Source: Schizochytrium sp. TIO01 (Eukaryota; Protista; Bigyra: Labyrinthulomycetes). Taken from it: a DNA stretch of 64,000 nt. The position numbers and the translations under genes were made by a program. A model generated the notes under the pieces. It searched no databases. It saw only the letters and a list, made by a program, of their open reading frames with translations, and had not been told where the DNA came from. Below, one piece after another: positions 4,687-57,807 of this stretch. The stretch spans positions 2,480,001 through 2,544,000 of the forward strand of contig SMSO01000025.1 of assembly GCA_004764695.1 (NCBI GenBank), given 5' to 3'. Position 1 is the stretch's first letter. The number at the start of each line of letters is the position of its first letter.

Positions 4687-7600
4687 TCAATGGGTTGAGC
4701 CATCTAAATCATCTAGTTCAAGATCATCGACTGCGTCTGCAGTAAAGTCCACATTCAGCATTCCATCATCGTCATCGTCATCGTTACCACCACCATTACT
4801 AGCATGCATCATCGTAAATCCAGGACTTAAATGCTCATTGTGCAATATTGGATCCATCACTGAGTCATGCAGAGGAATGCTTGGTGGTAAGTCCTCATCA
4901 GCTCTCGAGCCTGCTTGGTGAATTCGACGACGGTGCTCACGGATTGAACGCTGGATAACAAGTGTAGCGCTAAGCTGGCGCCTCCACGCATGAAAATTTT
5001 TACGCGCAAGAAGGCAACGGGTTGCTGCTTGAACTTGAATGACTTCTTGACGCGCTTGCTTGTACTCCCTCCGGGCGAGGAAGCCCTTTCCCACAGCCTG
5101 CACCTTCGTAGCCTTTTCCTCTAGATCAGCATCCCGGAGCTGGACTTTTTTGTCTCGAAAACCTTTCGCTTCGGTTTGCATTTTCCTAGAGGCAAGCACA
5201 CTCCGTCGCAATAGCCAGCGCCGAATATTTGTTTGAATTACGCGCGCCTCGCTTTCAAGTTCATGACGCTCTTCATCGTTCAAATTAGAAATAACGGCCA
5301 CAAGATTAGGACCATTTTCAGTCACAATCTTTTTCACTTTGGCGTCATTCCTTTCCTCTGTTGTCCCTAAAATTGGGTCCCGCGGAGGAGGGGAGCTCAA
5401 TAAATCTGACATATCATTTGCAGATGCATGCAGAGATGAGACGGAGGAAGAGGAAGCGGCAACATGATCGTGACCAGCGAAAGAGCTAGTCCTGGAGTGT
5501 CCAGGTGTAGATAAGGATGCACCTGGACTGCCATTCACAGCACTTGATACTGAAGTTCCATCCGTCTCTCGGACACCAAGAGAAAGTGCACAACGGTCTT
5601 TCAAACTCATTGATGCTAGCGCTTTCCGTAGCATTTTCTGCTGTTTGTCTTCCAATGACTCCTTGGGTTTAGCCTCCGTGTCCATCAAATCACCTGAAAG
5701 CGAGTCGACCGATGTCCCATTGTGCAGCGCTATAGAGGCAACAGATATACTTGAAGCCACTGATCTTACAGAAGAAGTAGACGCAGATGTATGTGCCGCT
5801 CCAGTTGACTGAAAGCTTTCGTAGACCTGATTATCATCTTCAGGACGCAGAATCTCTACAAGTTCCGGTAGCTCGTGAGCCTCTGCCAGTTGTGCTGCAG
5901 TGTTGCCATCAGCATCTCGCAGCAATGGATTCGCGCCCGCTGCCAACAGCTCTCCTGCCATGCCAATCTCTGCCACCTCGGCTGCCAAATGCAACGGGGT
6001 ATCACCTGTAGATGTTGTTTTGTTTGGATCAGCGCCATGGTTTAAGAGAAGACTCACGAGCTTTGCATGGTGGAAGGCTACCGCATAATGGAGTAAATTG
6101 AATCCAGAGTCATCCAAAGCATCAAGTTCCCCAAGCAAGTCATGTTCCTCCTTGCAGAGATCAACCAAGACCTTGGCTACCCGCTCTAGTAAGGATTCGG
6201 AGAGCTCAGTAAGCTCCTCGTCATTCAGCTGATCCATGTCCCGATCATCATCGATGTCCTCTGCTGTTCCGGGGACAGCGCCAGGTACTGGGGATGGCAG
6301 GCGACGACTTCGCTTGCGTTTGAGAAAACGACGAGGATCAGAGTTTTGAGAGTTCGGTGTCCCAATCGGGCTTACTCCAAACCGAGGCCGGAGCCCGTGT
6401 ACCACAAGTGGGGCAAGCGCAGCCTCGGCGCTTTTCGGACGAAGGCGGGGGTCTTCCTGCGATCGTGGCACATCAGCTCGAACTGAAGATATCATCGAGG
6501 TATCCGACAATGAAAAGTGCACGATGGCACCTGCGGAAGAAAGAGACTCGCAAAGATCAATCTTTGTGCGGTTAATCATGACCTCCAAGCTGGCGTGAGT
6601 ATTACGAGGCATCACAGGGGTCTCACAACGAATAACACCATTTGCGAGCATTGTGCCTTTCACAACATGTGTTTTAGCAAAAACTACATCAATATTTTCC
6701 ACTCCAACAGATAGAGACGATTTTGTAAATGGCTCACCCCCAATTTTTGAAAGAGAAATTAGCATTCGGGTTCCTCCGTTAATACAAGCAACGTTAGGTG
6801 CAAAGTCCTCAATCTCCAAAGTGTTTAAATCCACCAAAGTGACGAGCTCTGGAGAACGTGGATAAGCACTATTTGTTGGGCTTGTGACATAGAGGCTGTC
6901 CAGAAAGTTCATGTTCGGGTCAGGCAGTAAGGCTGGGTTCATATCAATATCATGCAAAAATGCGTGCATTTCAACGTCATCGTCGCGCGTTTGTGCGGCG
7001 CTTTCAGCCTCTGATAGAGGCCTGAATTCTGGGGTGGGAGCAACTTTTGCTTGAACTTGCATTTGGACCTGCTGGCTACCAGACTGAGTACTTCCTTGAG
7101 TCGAGTTGCTTCGATTTGAGTTCTTGCGTAGGAGCCCGCTTTGACCCTCTACAGAGGAAGAGTTTCTGTTGGGGGCGGCATTCTCCATTTTGACGCGAGG
7201 CTCCCTGAAGGCAACTTGAGTGCTCCCAGATTTCGCTAAGCTTCGGTTTGCAGATGATGCAGATGACTTCTCTGATACCGATTCGGCAGTATCCGTACCA
7301 TCCGCAGCAGCGGCAGCCTCAGCAGCGGCGACGGCGACAGAATGAGCAGGAGAAGTAGAAGCAGATGCGGTTGTCGAAGAGTCTGCAGGTAATTGCGAAC
7401 TAGCTTTGTTCATAGTGGAGGGTGGACTTGGAAGTAAGCGCGGACCTCCTCCTGAGGTTGGGATTGAAGGAGGCACAGGCAATGTTGTGACAGAACTTGA
7501 AGTTTTGCTATTAGAAGCAGAGGCCTTGGCTGAAGATGAAGCCCCTGCTGGTTTCGCTGTTACTGACGAGGTTCTGGATGGTTTGGCAGAATTCAAGCTA

Positions 7601-43052: not shown

Positions 43053-43606
43053 TCCTTACGCAGTGGTCAATCGTCTCGACGCAGCCAAGTAAAGAATCTG
43101 CTTACGAGAATCGCTGGGCTTGGCAGCGCCTCAGTGTCTCCTATTCTTTTAGAAAGCCAAAGTCATAACGAACGCTGGTCAGCACAGAAAGAATTAACCA
43201 GTCTACAGAATCGGAACTCAGATTTCCTATCAATATACATTCACGCAGAGCCATGCAGACATAACCCACAGAATGATCCAACGATACGCCTCAAGCGCAA
43301 GCCGTGCAAGAGAGAATAGATATGGCACGCCAATTTTGCCGAATTCTTCTATACACTAAATTGAGTAGTTCGTTCCTTTCCAGTCGTTCTCTTGTTCTCC
43401 TATCCTGTCCTTTAAGTTCTGTTCCTCTGTTCTGTTCTTTCATAAGTATAGCTTTGCATATATAGACCTATCTATATATATATGTTATTGACCTAGCTAG
43501 GTAGGTATATATATACTAGTAGTACTATCACTAATAGTAGTATCATCAATACTAGAAGTACTGATACCACCTACTATGTAGTGCTGTTATTGATTACACT
43601 TTGCTC

Positions 43607-46600
43607 GGCTCGTCTGCCATGCTGACAAAAGTCTCTCTTCCAAAAGAGCAAAAAACTCGCGCTTAGAACGCCTATGAATTAATATGGGAGACTCATTGGT
43701 GTTCTAGAACAGTGTTCTCAAGGGTGTTCTGGAACGGTGTTCTGTTCTTAGTTCTTATATATTATATGAGTCTAGCTAACAGTAACGGCGACTTGACTTG
43801 AAAACTCAGTCGCTGAAATCTGAGGCGCTTGAGCTTGACTTTGACTTGACATTGCTTGGTTGGGATTTTTGATCGCAGCTAAGATTAAATTTAAATGCGT
43901 AGACCCCCTTGCGTCAGATCTGGCTGCCCAATAGACCTGTAAATATGAAATATTGTAAACCCTCCAGATTCCACGAACAATGTCCATCGCAAATGCCCTA
44001 CGATAAACTTCATTCATATGTTCATCTTGAATTTCCTGGTGAGCAACTTCTTCAGCTACATCTCCACGCCATAAAGTATACATTAGAGTAGATACGTGAT
44101 ATCCGCAATCCACACCGTTTTTTTGGTTGCCTCGCCTAATCTCGATCTCCCAGTCTTCAGCTCCAAAAAGACGGATGGCATCGCCAAATACTTTCATCAC
44201 GTGGCTCGGTTCATGCAAGGTACTTAATGGGTCGTAAAAGACAACACGCGCTTGCCTTTGGTTAAAATAAAGAAGCTGCCAATGACTTCCTGTACAAAAC
44301 GGTAGCATAACATATTCAATGACATCTGGAATATAGATTGACCTCGTTGAGGAGCTGTCCTTTTGAAAATGGCCTCTTGGTGTGGCATTTGCAATCGCAT
44401 TGCATACAGACGATATAAACAAATCGTGTCGGTCATCTACCGAACTTGTGAGGAATTGAAGTGCGGTGCTAGGTACAAATGCGGTTCCGTGACACTTCTT
44501 TCTTTCTGCAGGCTTCATAACGCGATTTTCTTCGCAGCAGGTAGCACACCATGCATCCATTGCATCCCCTTGCATCCATGATAAAGGTTCCCCGAAAGAT
44601 TCGGGGTTAGTTGATTCGGAGCATGGCAAGTTCCCATGAGAGTCTAAGAACAGCCTTTGACACATGCCAAACTCTAGAAACGTATGATTCATAGTGATGT
44701 TGTTTGAATGAACAAAGTGTTTTCCACTTGTAAAAACAGAGTGCTTGGGAGAAATGGAGCTCTTCAGAAGACTGAACACCTTTGCTGAAGCTTTCCAGAA
44801 CGCTGTGCATTTTGAGTTAAACGTTCGCACAGGTCCTCCTTGTCTTGGTTGCATTTTGACACCGCGTACATTTCCAACCTTGGGGACATCTACAGTATGT
44901 TCTTTAGGGGCTATCGCTTGAGCCCTTCTTTTTTCAGACCCGAAAAAGTCTGTGGGTGGTAAACTGTCCAGGGCAGAAATTGTTGCTTCGCAGGTCTGAA
45001 GTTTGCACTCAGCGCCAAATGGCGTGGGGTGCCCTTCTCTTGGTGCATAGCAAGACTGACAGTACTTGCACTTGCTCAGATTTTCAGGAGCTCGCCAGAT
45101 GCTCTTTCGTTTACTTTTCAAATGCTTGAATTGGAAAAAGGTTTGTTGAGGTGCAAGGGGGAAGTTCTTCGTCATAATTGACCTCAACTCTGCTGTGTCA
45201 AATCGTTCCAGAGAGGGATGCCGAGAGAGGAGTTCTTCGTTTATGATGTTCGCTTCCAGATTGCAACGTGTTGAATAGTCCAGCTCTCTGATACTTTCCA
45301 ATAGATGCAAGGGATGCACCAAAGCACCATCTGCAGTAACAGGTACGTCGACCAATGGCTCAGTCATGTGCTCTAACTTGGACGCTAGCATTAGTTTTCG
45401 ATTTTTGGCAGAAATGCTATCTCTCTGATTCAGAAAATCTGCATATTGCCTGAGTAGGAACGCCGTCTTTGGTTTCAGATATTCCCTCAAGTCGCCCGGA
45501 TGAGAGATCTGCACGGAATCAAGCTTCGGAAGGAAAAGACCGTCAAGATCCCCTGCAGGACAAGCGTATCGATTCCACAACTGTGCAAAGCTTTCGAAGC
45601 TGTTAGACAGAATGGGCGCAGCTTTTCGATTGAAGTTTTTGGTTTTAAGAAGATATAAATAAAAGTCTTGCTCCACTTTGTCCTGCTGTTCGGGCTTACC
45701 TTTCATTTTGAATGGGCAAGGCGTGCTAGCTCCTATGAGGTCCTTGGGGCGAGGTCTGGCCCAACCAGAGCCTTTTATGCCGCAAGTTGTATAAGATGCC
45801 GACAGTACTTGCTGCTGCTTCTTCCTACATTCCACCGTTTGCTCGGCATCATCCCCACTATTTTCGCTGAGAACTCTCTCCCACGAGACGTCATCAGTCA
45901 GAGAGGTTCCAGATCGATTTGGCAAAGGATCTTCACAGAATGCAATCCAACGGGTACGGTCAGGCCTTGCCTCTTCGGCAGGGAACAAGCCTTTTTTTAC
46001 CCTTGGCGCAGAAGCAAGCTGCGCTTTTGGAAGATTTGTAATATTTTTTCGAACAGAACATCCAATGTGCAGATGAATATCAGCGTTTGAGCTACCAACC
46101 ACTAATTCTGATATTGGGTCATCCTCGTGTTCAGGCGGTTCTAACTGTACGCACGATATTTTGATCCTTTCTTTAAATTCCTCAGAATCAGAGTCTGTAC
46201 TTATACAATCTTCAAGAATTTCTACACAAGTTGAAAGGACTCTCTGAACACCAATATCACCTTGAGGTTCAGGCTTGTCACCGTTCTCTCCTTTAGTGAA
46301 AAGGCTGCCGTTTACTAGTATATTCATTGCTATCAGGCGCAAGCTGATGTGGTCTTTCAATTTTTTATCGATGCCAGCCTCGTCGAGGACTGATCGATCT
46401 GTTTCGGTGGGTACCCCTCCTCCCGTTAGTTTTCGAAGAACTTTCTGGAGGTAACTTATGGCTTTTCTTTTATGTTCTGGTCGTGCGAGAGCTTTTGCAA
46501 AGGCAAATATCACAGCAATGGCTTGCTCTACGGCATGCGCCAGTGTTGAGTTCTCCGTGCTGTCGAAGAAAATCGGCACCACAGTGGCTCGCGTCCTCAT

Positions 46601-49600
46601 TATATGATTAGACTCCAAAACAGAACCAACACTTGGCATCATGCTGAATCCCATATGTAAGTCATGAGAAACGCACAAAGGCAGTCGTGCATCTGGATAA
46701 GGGAGCTCATTATGCTCGATTTTACCATTGAACGCATCATTGACGAGGGAGTTTATCGTGAGGTGGTGGCTGAATGGTTGGTGAATTAAATACGAAGGTA
46801 AACCTTTTATCTCAATCATTCTGGAACGATTGTATTTAGCAACCACTTTGGTGAGTAGCGCGTCAGCACGAACAATACCAATGGTAGCACTTGCAACAGC
46901 CTGGTTCAACATACGATGGAACACCTCATTTGCATTAGTACCTCTATTTCCCACAAGATGATTTTTGCCATTGATTTTAGTCTGTAGAACGAGACCTGGA
47001 GGGTCGCTCAAGCAGCCCTTATGAACATGTTCAAAAAGGCCTGCAATATACTTGTCTAGGCCAACCCCTGTGGCGGTCTTAGATAAAAATAATCCATGCC
47101 GAAACCCATTTGGATAGGGTCCGAAATGTTCTACACAAGCGTTACCAGATCTTGGTTTGCAACGCTCTCGTACGCGATGAAGCAGGTCAGCACTGAGATC
47201 CATCTTCGAGTTCATAATATAGTGAGTCTTAAAAACTTCCATGATGCGCTTATATAGAACCTCTGGTTGTGGGATTCGGGTTTCAACAGCTTGATTGATA
47301 AGCCGATCTTTTGTGAAGTTGCTCTTACTCTTATGTTCCTGTTGAACCTGCTTCACTCGCTTGTGGTCGCGCTGAAGAACAGCGTTTGCTAATGCAGTCA
47401 TGAATGCAGTACGAGGTGCTCGGCTTTCGTTGCTGCTTTTCACCATTATTTGCTCCCAACGCTTGAGCCAGTGAAACAAATCGAGCTTGATGGGGACTCC
47501 CTTGAAAATTTGTGATAGGCATTTATTTAATTTTCCACAACATGTATCTGTCCAAATACATTCAGGCCGGTAATCCCGACCATGCATTTCCTGGCGTAGC
47601 TTGACGAATCGTCCTAAAGCTTCTCTTATTTCCCTCTCGTTCTCACTGTTCGCCAACCCACAATAGAATATAATCTGGTTGTGTTCGTTACTGATTGTGA
47701 GTAGGGCTTGATATGGCTGGTATATCCTAAAGGATTTGTCTTGGTCTTGGAATCGAAGTTTACAGCGCTCGGGAAACCGGAACGTGCAATCGATAGCGAT
47801 ATACCTGGCGCTGTATGACGCAATTTCGCGAAGCAAAGGTCTTGCCTCTCCTTTAAACTGGTCAATACATAATTCGTCGAGAAATTTGGAGCTTAATCGA
47901 TATCCGTTGTACTCCATGTCGAAGTTGCCAAAATTTTCAGGAGCCGTGATTGATTTCTCTTGCGTTTCTTCTTCATTTGAGCACGATGCTGATTGATTTG
48001 TCTGGTCGACCTGTTTGCTCGCTTGCTCAGCTGCTTGCTCGGCAGATTCTTTATTGATCTTGTCTCGGGCAAGTCGCTCGTTGCGCTGCTGGATAACCAT
48101 TCGAGCATACTCCACGCTCAGTAAGTCCTTTTCTCGGAGTATCTGGTTGATTGTAGTCTCCAAAAGTTCTTTCCAACCCTCTATAACCCTCGTTCGGTCC
48201 CTCTCACGTCGAGCAGTGCTGAGTTGCTTGATTTTCTCGCCGTTTTTTGTATCTAGGATGTTCTTAAGCTCATGGAAGACATCAACAACTGTAGAGATAT
48301 TGAGAGCAGACTTTAGGATTTTAATCTTTTTTTCTCCCAAACTCTTGATTTGCTTTAAATCAAATTCCAGTAATTCACGAGCAGCCGTCTCCTTTCTCAA
48401 AACCTCAGCAGAACATTTTTCGGGCTGGAATTGAATCTTAGATTTGAGCGTATTTGTCGAGTTCACTGCTTGCTTTTGAAAAAAACTTGGGATTGTATTG
48501 GGGCCAGCTTCATCGAAGCGCCGAGTGTGTTCTCCTAAGCTTGATGCATAGTAAAAGTACTCTAGACGATTATGGTTCCGTACCTGAGCCTCATTGAAAG
48601 CATCTGCAGCCCACGCGGGACTTTTCAACCACAATTGGCTGAGACGTTGGCTAACCTCTGTTTCAATCCCGTGGCGTGGGGTTAAGGTCAGGCCAAAGCG
48701 TATCCGTACGTCAGCAGGGCACAAACGAAGAACATCCTCACTTGTATTGCGAAACTCTTTATTGCACTTTTTACATTTATACTTTCGAGCCACGAGAAAC
48801 CAATTTGCAGTCGCACCAGCAATCTCTCGGTAATTTGGTGCCCAGAAGCCATCGTCACCAGAGACGCTGACAAGAGGTTCACCCAAATGCGCTTTTTGGT
48901 TGCAGTATGGACATGGCATGCGATTGTTCATCGACGCATACATTTTTGCTGGATGCCATAACCCAACGCTGCGCTGGTGAAAGTACTCTGGTGCAATTTG
49001 TTGACCTCTTTTTACTTTCGGCAGTTTGGGTTTCTGGAGCCAAGTGATTGTCCCATCAGGAACAATGTCGTACAGGGACTGGCATGTTTTGATATCCATT
49101 TTATCAAGTGTGTCTTTGCAGCTGTCGATAAATTTTTGTTGGATTAAGGTGATCGTAGTCTCGCGCTTCTCCTCATCTACATTAGCGCTTTCATTTAAGC
49201 CTTCCAGATCCTTTCTGATATCCTCATGACTCAAGGATTCCTGATCATTGTCCCCGGGAGTGGCTGTCGCCTGGCGAAGCTTGCAACGTGATGAAAATTG
49301 CATCATTTTCGTGTTTGATGTTTACCTCGTTGTTGAGTTTCGCTACCTCAAAGTATCATTTAATATGCCCTGATCATCCAGTGAATATTTCCAAGTCTCT
49401 TTGCACATGTATTCGAGCCCAAGGAATACGAGCTTAACCACCATCAAAGTCCAGTATTAAATTGCATCAGTGAAACGTCGGCGTAGTATTCGTTGAGGTG
49501 GATGTGCCAGTTTACCAGAAATATGTAACATCCTTGTGAGGAGACCCAGTGGTGATACACTTAATTATTTTCAGTGGAATTAGAGGAAGATTATCACTGA

Positions 49601-49842
49601 GTGTTCTTGCTAAAACCAGTAACAAAATTCATAAAGAGTTTTAAATTAAAAGCTAAATGTCATGCCGCGTCCCACAGTTAAAGCCATATATCTTATAAAA
49701 TGCATATCAAAAAACTCGCCAACACAATGATTTTGTGAGGAAAAGTAGAATTTCCCCCCAGATTTTCGCCTGTTCTCTCCTATGTTCTCTCCCCCCCCCG
49801 CGAGTTTTTTTTTTGAGCTCACGTCAGCATGGCAGATGAGCC
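43607..49842 (-). mobile_element. Full-length autonomous DNA transposon (6,236 bp) with 20-bp TIRs and 8-bp TSD
   Basis: Left TIR GGCTCGTCTGCCATGCTGAC (43607-43626); right TIR GTCAGCATGGCAGATGAGCC (49823-49842), one mismatch. Identical CTTTGCTC at 43599-43606 and 49843-49850. A single long transposase ORF lies inside. Confidence 0.93.
43772..49306 (-). CDS. DDE transposase (DxxH-insertion class, Dada/DUF6729-like) fused to a C-terminal Ulp1/C48 cysteine protease
   Basis: Zn-ribbon region CPYC...YKCKKC...FGLTLTPRHGI; putative catalytic IAIDCTF, IWTDTCC, KLDLFHW (DxxH), GCLSDP, RGTNANEVFH; second Zn motif CQSC...GH...C; protease motifs GSHWQLL, FYDPL, QKNGVDCG. Confidence 0.85.
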   Translation of the reverse strand: MMQFSSRCKLRQATATPGDNDQESLSHEDIRKDLEGLNESANVDEEKRETTITLIQQKFIDSCKDTLDKMDIKTCQSLYDIVPDGTITWLQKPKLPKVKRGQQIAPEYFHQRSVGLWHPAKMYASMNNRMPCPYCNQKAHLGEPLVSVSGDDGFWAPNYREIAGATANWFLVARKYKCKKCNKEFRNTSEDVLRLCPADVRIRFGLTLTPRHGIETEVSQRLSQLWLKSPAWAADAFNEAQVRNHNRLEYFYYASSLGEHTRRFDEAGPNTIPSFFQKQAVNSTNTLKSKIQFQPEKCSAEVLRKETAARELLEFDLKQIKSLGEKKIKILKSALNISTVVDVFHELKNILDTKNGEKIKQLSTARRERDRTRVIEGWKELLETTINQILREKDLLSVEYARMVIQQRNERLARDKINKESAEQAAEQASKQVDQTNQSASCSNEEETQEKSITAPENFGNFDMEYNGYRLSSKFLDELCIDQFKGEARPLLREIASYSARYIAIDCTFRFPERCKLRFQDQDKSFRIYQPYQALLTISNEHNQIIFYCGLANSENEREIREALGRFVKLRQEMHGRDYRPECIWTDTCCGKLNKCLSQIFKGVPIKLDLFHWLKRWEQIMVKSSNESRAPRTAFMTALANAVLQRDHKRVKQVQQEHKSKSNFTKDRLINQAVETRIPQPEVLYKRIMEVFKTHYIMNSKMDLSADLLHRVRERCKPRSGNACVEHFGPYPNGFRHGLFLSKTATGVGLDKYIAGLFEHVHKGCLSDPPGLVLQTKINGKNHLVGNRGTNANEVFHRMLNQAVASATIGIVRADALLTKVVAKYNRSRMIEIKGLPSYLIHQPFSHHLTINSLVNDAFNGKIEHNELPYPDARLPLCVSHDLHMGFSMMPSVGSVLESNHIMRTRATVVPIFFDSTENSTLAHAVEQAIAVIFAFAKALARPEHKRKAISYLQKVLRKLTGGGVPTETDRSVLDEAGIDKKLKDHISLRLIAMNILVNGSLFTKGENGDKPEPQGDIGVQRVLSTCVEILEDCISTDSDSEEFKERIKISCVQLEPPEHEDDPISELVVGSSNADIHLHIGCSVRKNITNLPKAQLASAPRVKKGLFPAEEARPDRTRWIAFCEDPLPNRSGTSLTDDVSWERVLSENSGDDAEQTVECRKKQQQVLSASYTTCGIKGSGWARPRPKDLIGASTPCPFKMKGKPEQQDKVEQDFYLYLLKTKNFNRKAAPILSNSFESFAQLWNRYACPAGDLDGLFLPKLDSVQISHPGDLREYLKPKTAFLLRQYADFLNQRDSISAKNRKLMLASKLEHMTEPLVDVPVTADGALVHPLHLLESIRELDYSTRCNLEANIINEELLSRHPSLERFDTAELRSIMTKNFPLAPQQTFFQFKHLKSKRKSIWRAPENLSKCKYCQSCYAPREGHPTPFGAECKLQTCEATISALDSLPPTDFFGSEKRRAQAIAPKEHTVDVPKVGNVRGVKMQPRQGGPVRTFNSKCTAFWKASAKVFSLLKSSISPKHSVFTSGKHFVHSNNITMNHTFLEFGMCQRLFLDSHGNLPCSESTNPESFGEPLSWMQGDAMDAWCATCCEENRVMKPAERKKCHGTAFVPSTALQFLTSSVDDRHDLFISSVCNAIANATPRGHFQKDSSSTRSIYIPDVIEYVMLPFCTGSHWQLLYFNQRQARVVFYDPLSTLHEPSHVMKVFGDAIRLFGAEDWEIEIRRGNQKNGVDCGYHVSTLMYTLWRGDVAEEVAHQEIQDEHMNEVYRRAFAMDIVRGIWRVYNISYLQVYWAARSDARGSTHLNLILAAIKNPNQAMSSQSQAQAPQISATEFSSQVAVTVS

Positions 49843-51205
49843 CTTTGCTCTTTGGTGTCCCTCTCGTAAAATCTAAACTCTTCTTATCGTTGGTCTACAC
49901 TTGCACACGATTTCACTGATTGTGCTATGCTTTAAACGAACCTGGGTTTTCACTCAAGCAAACAAAGGCATTGATTGGAATGGCCTCTTGTTAATGCTGT
50001 ACTTATGAAAACCAAGACTCCATACAACTGATATATTCTAATTAGTTAGGTTTTTATTGAAAAGAGAGGTTAGGTAAGAAAATGGAATGGCCAAGGAACC
50101 ACAAGCTCCAAAGACTACAAGTGAAGGAAGTAAACCTTCAATACAAACCAGCAAAGTACTTGAGCCAGGAGTTTGGTGTCTCAGCAGGTGCCTTTCGGGA
50201 GCCTCCCCGGAGGCGATCGCATAGACGCAAGTGATGACGTTCAGCGTGCCTATGAATGAGGTGTGTGCCGGCGGCCGCGAGCAACACAGCACAGAACTGC
50301 ACAGCACAGCAGCGCTGGCCGTACGATTAAATGTCCTCCGCCAAGCAAAACGAGAGTTTTCAATGCCAGATTGGTGACCTACTTTTAGCGTGCCTACCGA
50401 GGCGCATCCGCCGTCTCCAAAGACATCGGACCTCAGAAGGGCGCCTACTGAAAAGCGAGATTCACCGCAAGCTTGGACTTTGGCTCTGTGAACGCCTCTG
50501 TGTCATGCTTTAGCCTAAACCTGAGACTTCGACAGGTGAACAAGGTGGATCAAAGTCAAGAAAACTCGAATGCTGTATCGTTCGTTGGCCTCTGCCAGTC
50601 GCTCACTCACAACGCCGAGGTTTCCCCTGGTGTAAACTGGTTCTTCGCCGAGCAGAGTACACCCGCAAAACGTGCAATGAATGTGGGCACTACCATCCAC
50701 GACAAGCTTGCAAGATCCGAGGGTTTCCAAGGCCTAAAATGCAAACAAAGACGTAGTCGATCATGATATCCACGCCACCAGAGGTATCCTCTGCACTCCA
50801 AGGAAGGATGGGATAGTGACGATGTCGTGCCTCGGAGTCGATTCGCGGGTTATTGTTTTGACCCGCGATTAGGTTATGCCACCGTAGGTAATGCAAGTTC
50901 TGCGAACCTTACAGGTTAGATGCTAAGTAGGAGTATAGGTGGACCGAGGTAGGTGCGAGGAAGGGGTGTGTAAAGGTACTAGTCTTGACCTAAGTGTCGG
51001 GGGGGGGAGGCTTTAGACTGATAGAACTTCTTTGTAGTCTGTAAGAACAAAGTTTGTGTGTAAGCTTTTCCTTTTAATCTTGGGAGCGAGGTAGGTGAGG
51101 TCTGGCACTTGATGGGGAGTCTGATCAAGGCAGTCAGCAAAACTCAAACGCAGCCTACTTCACGCAAATTGCACGCAATCTACCTCACGTAAATCGGAAT
51201 AAACG

Positions 51206-57650: not shown

Positions 57651-57807
57651 AAGCCATTGATCTTATTAAATGGATATCAGAAAACCCGCCAACACAGTGG
57701 TTTTGTGAGGAGAAGTAGAATCCCCCCCCTGATTTTCGCCTGTTCTCTCCTATGCTCTCCTCCCCCCATGAGTTTTTTTGAGCTCACGTCAGCATGGCAG
57801 ATGTGCC
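57651..57807. mobile_element. Orphan, diverged copy of the transposon's right terminus including the TIR
   Basis: Colinear with 49681-49842 (TTTTGTGAGG, AAGTAGAAT, GATTTTCGCCTGTTCTCTCCTATG, TTTTGAGCTCACGTCAGCATGGCAGATG), ending in TGCC. Confidence 0.9.

Follow-up and report, generated by a model that had tools for sequence, protein, structure and literature searches.

A probable Dada-type DNA transposon bearing terminal inverted repeats and a Ulp1-type protease domain in the labyrinthulomycete Schizochytrium sp. TIO01

The transposon and its ends

We analysed a stretch of 64,000 nucleotides from Schizochytrium sp. TIO01 (assembly GCA_004764695.1, contig SMSO01000025.1, positions 2,480,001 to 2,544,000), referred to here as the window, and identified within it a DNA transposon of 6,236 bp that occupies window positions 43607-49842. 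An earlier account of this DNA, made from the letters alone and called here the sequence-only reading, had described a Dada-like transposon with 20-bp terminal inverted repeats (TIRs) carrying one mismatch, a perfect 8-bp target site duplication (TSD) and an uninterrupted open reading frame (ORF) of 1,844 codons. All three structural features were recovered in our analysis: the left and right TIRs match at 19 of 20 positions, the same 8-bp sequence directly abuts both ends, and one intact ORF lies on the minus strand (Table 1). Only two other ORFs of at least 100 amino acids (aa) are found within the element; both are antisense and start with TTG, and we have treated them as spurious. The element contains 13 instances of the hexamer TGTTCT, where about 1.5 would be expected, including the pair near the right end, which lies at element positions 6165-6182.

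Table 1. Features of the transposon, in window coordinates
Feature	Position	Strand	Evidence or remark
Left TSD copy, CTTTGCTC	43599..43606		Directly outside left end
Left 20-bp TIR, GGCTCGTCTGCCATGCTGAC	43607..43626	+	Sequence; independently, contig breaks in other runs at 43604-43607
Second block common to both ends, AAAAAACTCGCG	43650..43661	+	Lengthens the imperfect TIR to ~55 bp with gaps
Five clustered subterminal TGTTCT repeats	43700..43748 (element positions 94-142)	+	Candidate transposase-binding sites
Single intronless ORF, 1,844-aa transposase-protease fusion	43772..49306	-	ORF translation
Ulp1/SENP-type cysteine protease, Pfam C48, aa 1663-1773 (H1675, D1692, Q1728, C1734)	43988..44320	-	Pfam E 8e-9
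C-terminal CCHC zinc finger, aa 1413-1434, CKYCQSCYAPREGHPTPFGAEC	45005..45070	-	Present in family consensus
RNase H-like DDE core with alpha-helical insertion domain, aa 495-835 (D506, D587, D609xxH612, C765LSDP, E794)	46802..47824	-	Conservation, model
N-terminal CCCC zinc domain, Pfam DUF6729, aa 88-221 (C132, C135, C178, C181)	48644..49045	-	Pfam E 9e-9, above cut-off
5' non-coding region before ORF; presumed promoter	49307..49822	-	Holds two TGTTCT repeats at 49771-49788
Right 20-bp TIR, reverse complement, GGCTCATCTGCCATGCTGAC	49823..49842	-	Sequence
Right TSD copy, CTTTGCTC	49843..49850		Directly outside right end

Copies, insertion sites and mobility

A search of the whole genome (64 Mb in 37 contigs, with the window on contig 24) identified five copies that do not differ from one another anywhere in their 6,236 bp. 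These lie on four contigs, each at a different site and with its own perfect 8-bp TSD, namely ATAAGTCT, CTTTGCTC, TGATTCAC, TATGTGTG and ACCAAGTG. We also found an internal-deletion derivative of 2,073 bp, in which element positions 1-816 are joined to 4963-6236 at 96-98% identity, and this derivative is flanked by the perfect TSD CTTCAATA. Perfect 8-bp TSDs are therefore present at six of the seven clearly matched end pairs, the chance of such a match being 1.5e-5 per pair; the seventh pair belongs to an older rearranged copy of 97-98% identity with a degraded TSD. No TSD was found at two further old non-autonomous end pairs, which are 1.4 kb each and have diverged TIRs. The genome-wide survey of ends that the sequence-only reading had proposed thus shows the same stagger at the same termini in other copies, and its suggestion of a young and possibly active element is borne out by the five identical copies.

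Older material is also present in the genome, comprising two truncated one-sided copies (99.5-99.7%), one fragment of 92% identity and about 30 diverged right-end-like repeats of roughly 70-87% identity that carry the TIR variant GGCACATCTGCCATGCTGAC. The TIR pattern itself matches at 29 places in the genome and at none for the reversed control. Taken together, the identical copies and the older diverged material indicate that this transposon family is an old resident which has undergone a very recent burst. Within the window, a solo right-end fragment at 57651-57807 is 87% identical to element positions 6075-6236 and has the TIR variant GGCACATCTGCCATGCTGAC. It belongs to the group of about 30 diverged repeats and not to the young family, and thus a working 14-kb composite that includes the ankyrin gene looks unlikely.

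The surroundings of the insertions were examined for small-RNA genes. The 1.5-kb flanks contained no tRNA according to ARAGORN and no Rfam family at gathering thresholds, and ARAGORN detected no tRNA in six empty sites that were rejoined computationally. At E<=1, nothing came up in the flanks with Rfam except a TG-repeat 'mir-297' and, about 700 bp from one insertion, a weak match to a snoRNA. Small-RNA gene targeting was rejected on these results, in keeping with the sequence-only reading, which had placed the window insertion outside such genes. No long ORF crosses any of the rejoined sites, which indicates that the insertions are intergenic. The six TSDs share no common consensus and have a mean guanine-cytosine content of about 38%, six sites being too few to define a preference. 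Since the targets are unrelated sequences, the TSD length of 8 bp is unambiguous.

Most of the element is also held in 20 public runs from 11 studies under seven organism labels. We examined the contigs of four of these runs (X5, X6, X15 and X17), which are labelled as four other organisms, and in them the element is approximately 99.6-99.8% identical. The contigs break at 43604-43607 into several different flanks, which fixes the left terminus independently and shows that other strains or close species carry the element at other sites. The flank at 43400-43599 was not found in the contigs of any of the four runs at a likeness of at least 95%. The high identity of the element where this flank is absent may reflect either close strains with variable intergenic DNA or a recent spread of the element between lineages. 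Based on its precise ends, its 8-bp stagger, the identical copies at unrelated sites and the different sites in other strains, the element is mobile. The five identical copies, along with the strain-to-strain differences in insertion, make it likely that the element is still active in a culturable protist lineage.

Domains and predicted structure of the transposase

A Pfam scan of the 1,844-aa protein placed DUF6729 and Peptidase_C48 above their cut-offs and returned nothing else of note. The catalytic motifs recorded in the sequence-only reading (DCT, TDxCC, LDxxH, CLSDP and RGTNxxExFH) are all present, as DCT (D506), TDTCC (D587), LDLFH (D609, H612), CLSDP (765-769) and RGTNANEVFH (788-797), and so is the DUF6729-like zinc region listed with them. 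Relatives are few: a HMMER scan of 1.84 billion representative proteins retrieved only 230, the best full-length matches being 23-30% identical, and the exact protein was not found in a collection of 15 billion proteins. Residues conserved across about 100 relatives include C132, C135, C178, C181, D506, D587-x-C-C, D609-x-x-H612, H760, C765-L-S-D-P, R788-G-T-x3-E794 and N826, and the zinc-binding pattern C132-x2-C135...C178-x2-C181 is kept in 92-100% of 62-67 relatives. The C-terminal finger has the spacing C1413-x2-C1416-x9-H-x7-C, and that of Dada-U6_DR has been given as C-x2-C-x9-H-x8-C (PMC3706591).

An AlphaFold (AF2) model of aa 470-900, with a predicted local distance difference test score (pLDDT) of 84.4 and a predicted template modelling score of 0.84, shows an RNase H-like sheet with D506 on strand 1, D587 after strand 4 and DxxH after strand 5, followed by a helical insertion domain and by E794 on the next helix. 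In the model, an intact catalytic D-D-E and the DxxH sit in a fold of the RNase H type into which a helical domain is inserted. Foldseek ranked the P element transposase highest (E 2e-4), followed by ISCth4 (9e-4), and in an exhaustive structural search the best solved fold was ISCth4 of the IS256 family (Z 13.9 over 239 residues), with further matches to the P element (Z 9.2 over 249 residues), retroviral integrases (about 9), Hermes (8.6) and MuA (8.2). These neighbours belong to the group near which Kojima and Jurka had set Dada (MuDR, hAT, P, Kolobok and IS256; PMC3706591), and the sequence-only reading had likewise put the protein there from its catalytic layout. The N-terminal domain was also modelled with confidence (aa 80-300, pLDDT 83.7); its best match in the PDB reached only Z 4.5 and involved helices alone, and no known fold could be assigned. 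When the PDB was searched by sequence with the core profile, only the SENP/Ulp1 portion of long relatives was matched.

The protein ends in a Ulp1-type protease domain, as had been recognised from the translation. Its C48 score of 36 bits exceeds the Pfam cut-off of 20.7, and H1675, D1692, Q1728 and C1734 are all matched in an alignment with 6dg4, a Ulp1-like SUMO protease of solved structure. By this alignment the protein retains the His-Asp-Cys triad and the oxyanion Gln of the Ulp1/SENP family, and the protease triad is intact. The same architecture was found again in five distant relatives. Ulp1 fusions are known to recur independently in the transposons of Mutator-like elements (MULEs) and Ginger1, and a role in transposition has been proposed rather than shown (PMC2836005). 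Ginger1, which carries C-terminal Ulp1 or OTU domains, resembles the present element in having a transposase fused at its C terminus to a Ulp1-type cysteine protease, but the Ginger1 core is of the integrase type, carries a GPY/F motif and bears no sequence relationship to that of the element (PMC2836005).

Relationship to the Dada superfamily

The Dada superfamily was described by Kojima and Jurka in 2013 (PMC3706591) and treated again by Kojima in 2022 (PMC8869645); the former authors placed it in the neighbourhood of MuDR, hAT, P, Kolobok and IS256 (PMC3706591). Published Dada elements are without TIRs, having only short subterminal inverted repeats, and produce TSDs of 6-7 bp, and all those with defined ends sit in U6, U1, 5S or tRNA genes (PMC3706591, PMC8869645). 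For Dada-U1 and Dada-tIA_PMar, apparent 8-bp duplications were seen and the authors could not exclude a length of 8 bp (PMC3706591). A DEDDy exonuclease located between the second D and DxxH has been reported only for Dada elements of Laccaria and Ectocarpus (Dada-1_LB, Dada-2_LB and Dada-1_ES; PMC3706591).

The window protein shares with Dada the DDE triad with DxxH after the second D, the N-terminal CCCC zinc finger within the DUF6729 region, the motifs D-N/T-C-C, L-D-x-F-H, CLSDP and RGTNxxE, a post-core region and the C-terminal CCHC finger. In the alignment of Dataset S1 (PMC3706591) we found the same motif order, running from an N-terminal W-x-P..CP.C..Y-x-C-x2-C through SIDH / D-N-C-C, L-D-I-F-H, C-L-S-D-P and R-G-T-N-x2-E..H to a conserved post-core segment and a C-terminal CxxC..H..C finger; the core motif strings DNCC, LDIFH, CLSDP and RGTN are present only in subsets of its 36 sequences. 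The zinc pattern W-x-P..CP.C..Y.C..C also occurs in Dada-1_LB and Dada-2_LB. In addition, the length of the element falls within the range of 4.7-11 kb for Dada, and its coding region is intronless, as in the Dada of Perkinsus.

Further evidence comes from distant relatives of the window protein (phmmer E 1e-12 to 1e-6), which combine DUF6729 with a DEDDy 3'-5' exonuclease (DNA_pol_A_exo1) positioned exactly between the second D and DxxH, as in Dada. When the Ulp1-bearing group (the window protein with P0005, P0008, P0010, P0033 and P0061) was compared with the exonuclease-bearing group using hhalign, the two matched at 100% probability with an E value of 3.3e-48 over 568 columns. The motif counterparts, the exonuclease architecture among relatives and this profile match support the view, put forward in the sequence-only reading, that the element is Dada-like and yet atypical. 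In a tree of 85 core sequences, the exonuclease group formed one clade with a Shimodaira-Hasegawa-like approximate likelihood ratio test (SH-aLRT) value of 95.

The exonuclease-bearing Dada-type proteins (P0067, P0076, P0087, P0099, P0129, P0134 and P0142) come from Plasmodiophora brassicae, Amoeboaphelidium protococcarum, one species of Podochytrium and many environmental contigs, a host range wider than the Laccaria and Ectocarpus of the 2013 paper.

It is probable, on this evidence, that the element is an autonomous cut-and-paste DNA transposon, active at present or until very recently, whose transposase falls within the Dada superfamily, taken broadly (DUF6729-type DDE, C/DxxH group), and represents a deep separate lineage with a C-terminal Ulp1-type protease. 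Several observations weigh against this interpretation. The TSDs of 6-7 bp reported for Dada are replaced by perfect 8-bp TSDs at six independent insertions; a 20-bp TIR and a second shared block are present where Dada has none; and the flanks and the six empty sites point to unrelated intergenic targets in place of small-RNA genes. The protein also has a Ulp1 end, a domain not reported for Dada and one whose role in the element is a matter of speculation. In the core tree the window protein pairs only with the Ulp1-bearing P0005 (SH-aLRT 92), on a deep and poorly resolved branch among long branches. The proposed tie to named Dada elements comes from motifs read in the published alignment and from the shared diagnostic architecture, the tree containing no Dada sequence from Repbase or Dfam. 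As to activity, no excision footprint or empty allele was seen for the window insertion site, and the sequences from other runs, being assembled contigs, cannot show transcription; their 'RNA?' labels are conjectural, and flank DNA forms part of one contig.

Among the papers searched, none mentions DUF6729 and none links Dada with Ulp1, and no TIR-bearing or non-specific elements are described in the Dada papers among them. The lineage is therefore undescribed relative to these papers, the entries of Repbase and Dfam lying outside this comparison. The suggestion in the sequence-only reading that this might be a new TIR-bearing lineage stands to the same extent, for the papers searched and exclusive of those two databases.

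Alternative placements

The features that set the element apart from Dada could also mean that it represents a superfamily of its own, the sister of Dada in the C/DxxH group (MuDR/IS256, hAT, P, Kolobok and Dada), with the TIR-less and target-specific Dada elements as a separate derived branch. Apart from the transposase, all published hallmarks of Dada differ, core identity to any relative is at most 30%, the protein branches deeply outside the exonuclease-bearing clade, and the relatives found number only 230 among 1.8 billion representative proteins. However, the zinc and catalytic motifs are all common to Dada, as are the N-terminal domain in full and the post-core region, and a profile-profile E value of 3e-48 over 568 columns corresponds to similarity within a superfamily, given that superfamilies are usually defined by transposase homology. 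We therefore regard a separate superfamily as unlikely. A divergent MULE is a still less probable explanation. MULEs have long TIRs, often of at least 100 bp, and TSDs of 8-11 bp; the 8-bp TSD of the element fits this range, and its TIR measures only 20 bp, or roughly 55 bp once gaps are allowed. Ulp1 domains are known from several lineages of MULEs and are documented in the Mutator transposons of plants, hydra and lancelet (PMC2836005), and the core shares with MULE and IS256 transposases a C/DxxH-type DDE fold with an inserted helical domain, best matched by ISCth4. The isolated core also weakly matches PF10551 (E 0.0068), and the nearest ESM-Atlas cluster, from an oomycete, bears the automatic name 'MULE transposase domain-containing protein (Fragment)', the other ESM-Atlas neighbours being chordate DUF6729 clusters. 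But the PF10551 match of 17.3 bits lies below the Pfam cut-off of 27.6, neither PF10551 nor PF00872 was found above threshold in the isolated core or in 31 relatives, and none of those 31 matches MULE, Transposase_mut or the SWIM finger. The window protein, unlike these transposases, has the Dada-specific DUF6729 as its putative N-terminal DNA-binding domain and also the Dada-specific CLSDP and RGTNxxE motifs and CCHC finger, in addition to strong homology to exonuclease-bearing Dada-type proteins. Some resemblance to MuDR and IS256 is to be expected because published work already puts Dada near both (PMC3706591), and the sub-threshold MULE match and the ESM-Atlas neighbours are consistent with a protein of Dada type that has a remote kinship to MULE.

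Zisupton/KDZ elements enter the comparison through their ends, since TIRs and 8-bp TSDs are Zisupton traits (PMC12730594) and both are found here, together with a single large protein. Zisupton proteins are recognised by the KDZ domain PF18758 (PMC9297572). This domain gave no match to the window protein at E values up to 0.1 or to 30-31 relatives, and none anywhere in the genome, though the control genomes of that search were silent too; moreover, the catalytic motifs are those of Dada. A KDZ/Zisupton identity was rejected for want of any PF18758 match, and we consider it very improbable. The mixture of Dada and Zisupton traits that the sequence-only reading had perceived holds for the 8-bp TSD (PMC12730594), but in the absence of a KDZ domain the likeness is superficial and limited to the structure of the ends.

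Proposed mechanism

Placement within Dada in the broad sense suggests how the element might move. The N-terminal CCCC zinc domain, perhaps with the CCHC finger, would bind both the TIRs and the TGTTCT repeats in subterminal position, and the DDE core would excise the element and join its 3' ends, by attack of the 3'-OH groups, to target strands 8 bp apart, after which gap filling would yield the 8-bp TSD. Copy number could rise if the gap left by excision is repaired from a sister copy, or if the element transposes while DNA is being replicated. The internal-deletion derivative is consistent with abortive repair of such a gap. Transcription may start within the 536-bp region upstream of the ORF. 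More speculatively, the Ulp1 domain might strip SUMO, or a modifier like it, off host factors of repair or chromatin or off the transposase.

Implications for Dada elements

Dada has been known almost only as the DNA-transposon superfamily that strictly targets small-RNA genes, and the ends and TSD lengths of its members are hard to define because their targets are repeats. The element described here gives the superfamily clear ends, TIRs, an unambiguous 8-bp TSD and candidate binding repeats. It also suggests that target specificity is not intrinsic to the transposase fold, and it frames a comparison of which part of the Dada protein confers targeting. We raise, tentatively and with some doubt, the idea that the lineage shows Dada as it was before specialisation on small-RNA genes, that is, bounded by TIRs, non-specific and with an 8-bp stagger. 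If this is true, 8 bp may be the real stagger throughout the superfamily, which would fit the doubt expressed by the authors over Dada-U1 and Dada-tIA, and target specificity would be a later addition, which a comparison of the two protein types could locate. Potentially, the element would then also offer a ready-made transposon, intronless, with a single ORF and naturally active, for insertional mutagenesis in thraustochytrids.

The Pfam family DUF6729, officially of unknown function, is tied by this element to the putative DNA-binding head of a demonstrably mobile transposase. The element also adds one more independent fusion of Ulp1 to a transposase after MULE and Ginger1, which strengthens the idea that de-SUMOylation helps transposons.

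Other DUF6729 genes in the genome

Another gene of the same genome, L060 (G000:C3:1623377-1626718), encodes only a DUF6729 region resembling transposase aa 30-483 and a CCHC region resembling aa 1402-1460, and is without a DDE core. With an 830-aa transcript of MMETSP0960, which is probably Aurantiochytrium limacinum, it shares 99.6% identity, and its counterpart in Hondaea fermentalgiana, GBG34801.1, is 48% identical and adds leucine-rich repeats (LRR); the proteins P0004, P0151 and P0003 are grouped with this observation. Judging from these comparisons, L060 is a candidate for a domesticated Dada-type DNA-binding protein that is conserved between thraustochytrid genera. Three further DUF6729 matches lie outside the window, at C34:601642-602025, C24:917580-918125 and C6:1108864-1109391, in open frames of 1,848, 1,912 and 1,596 aa. 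These are not copies of the window element, and the genome thus probably hosts other Dada-type families.

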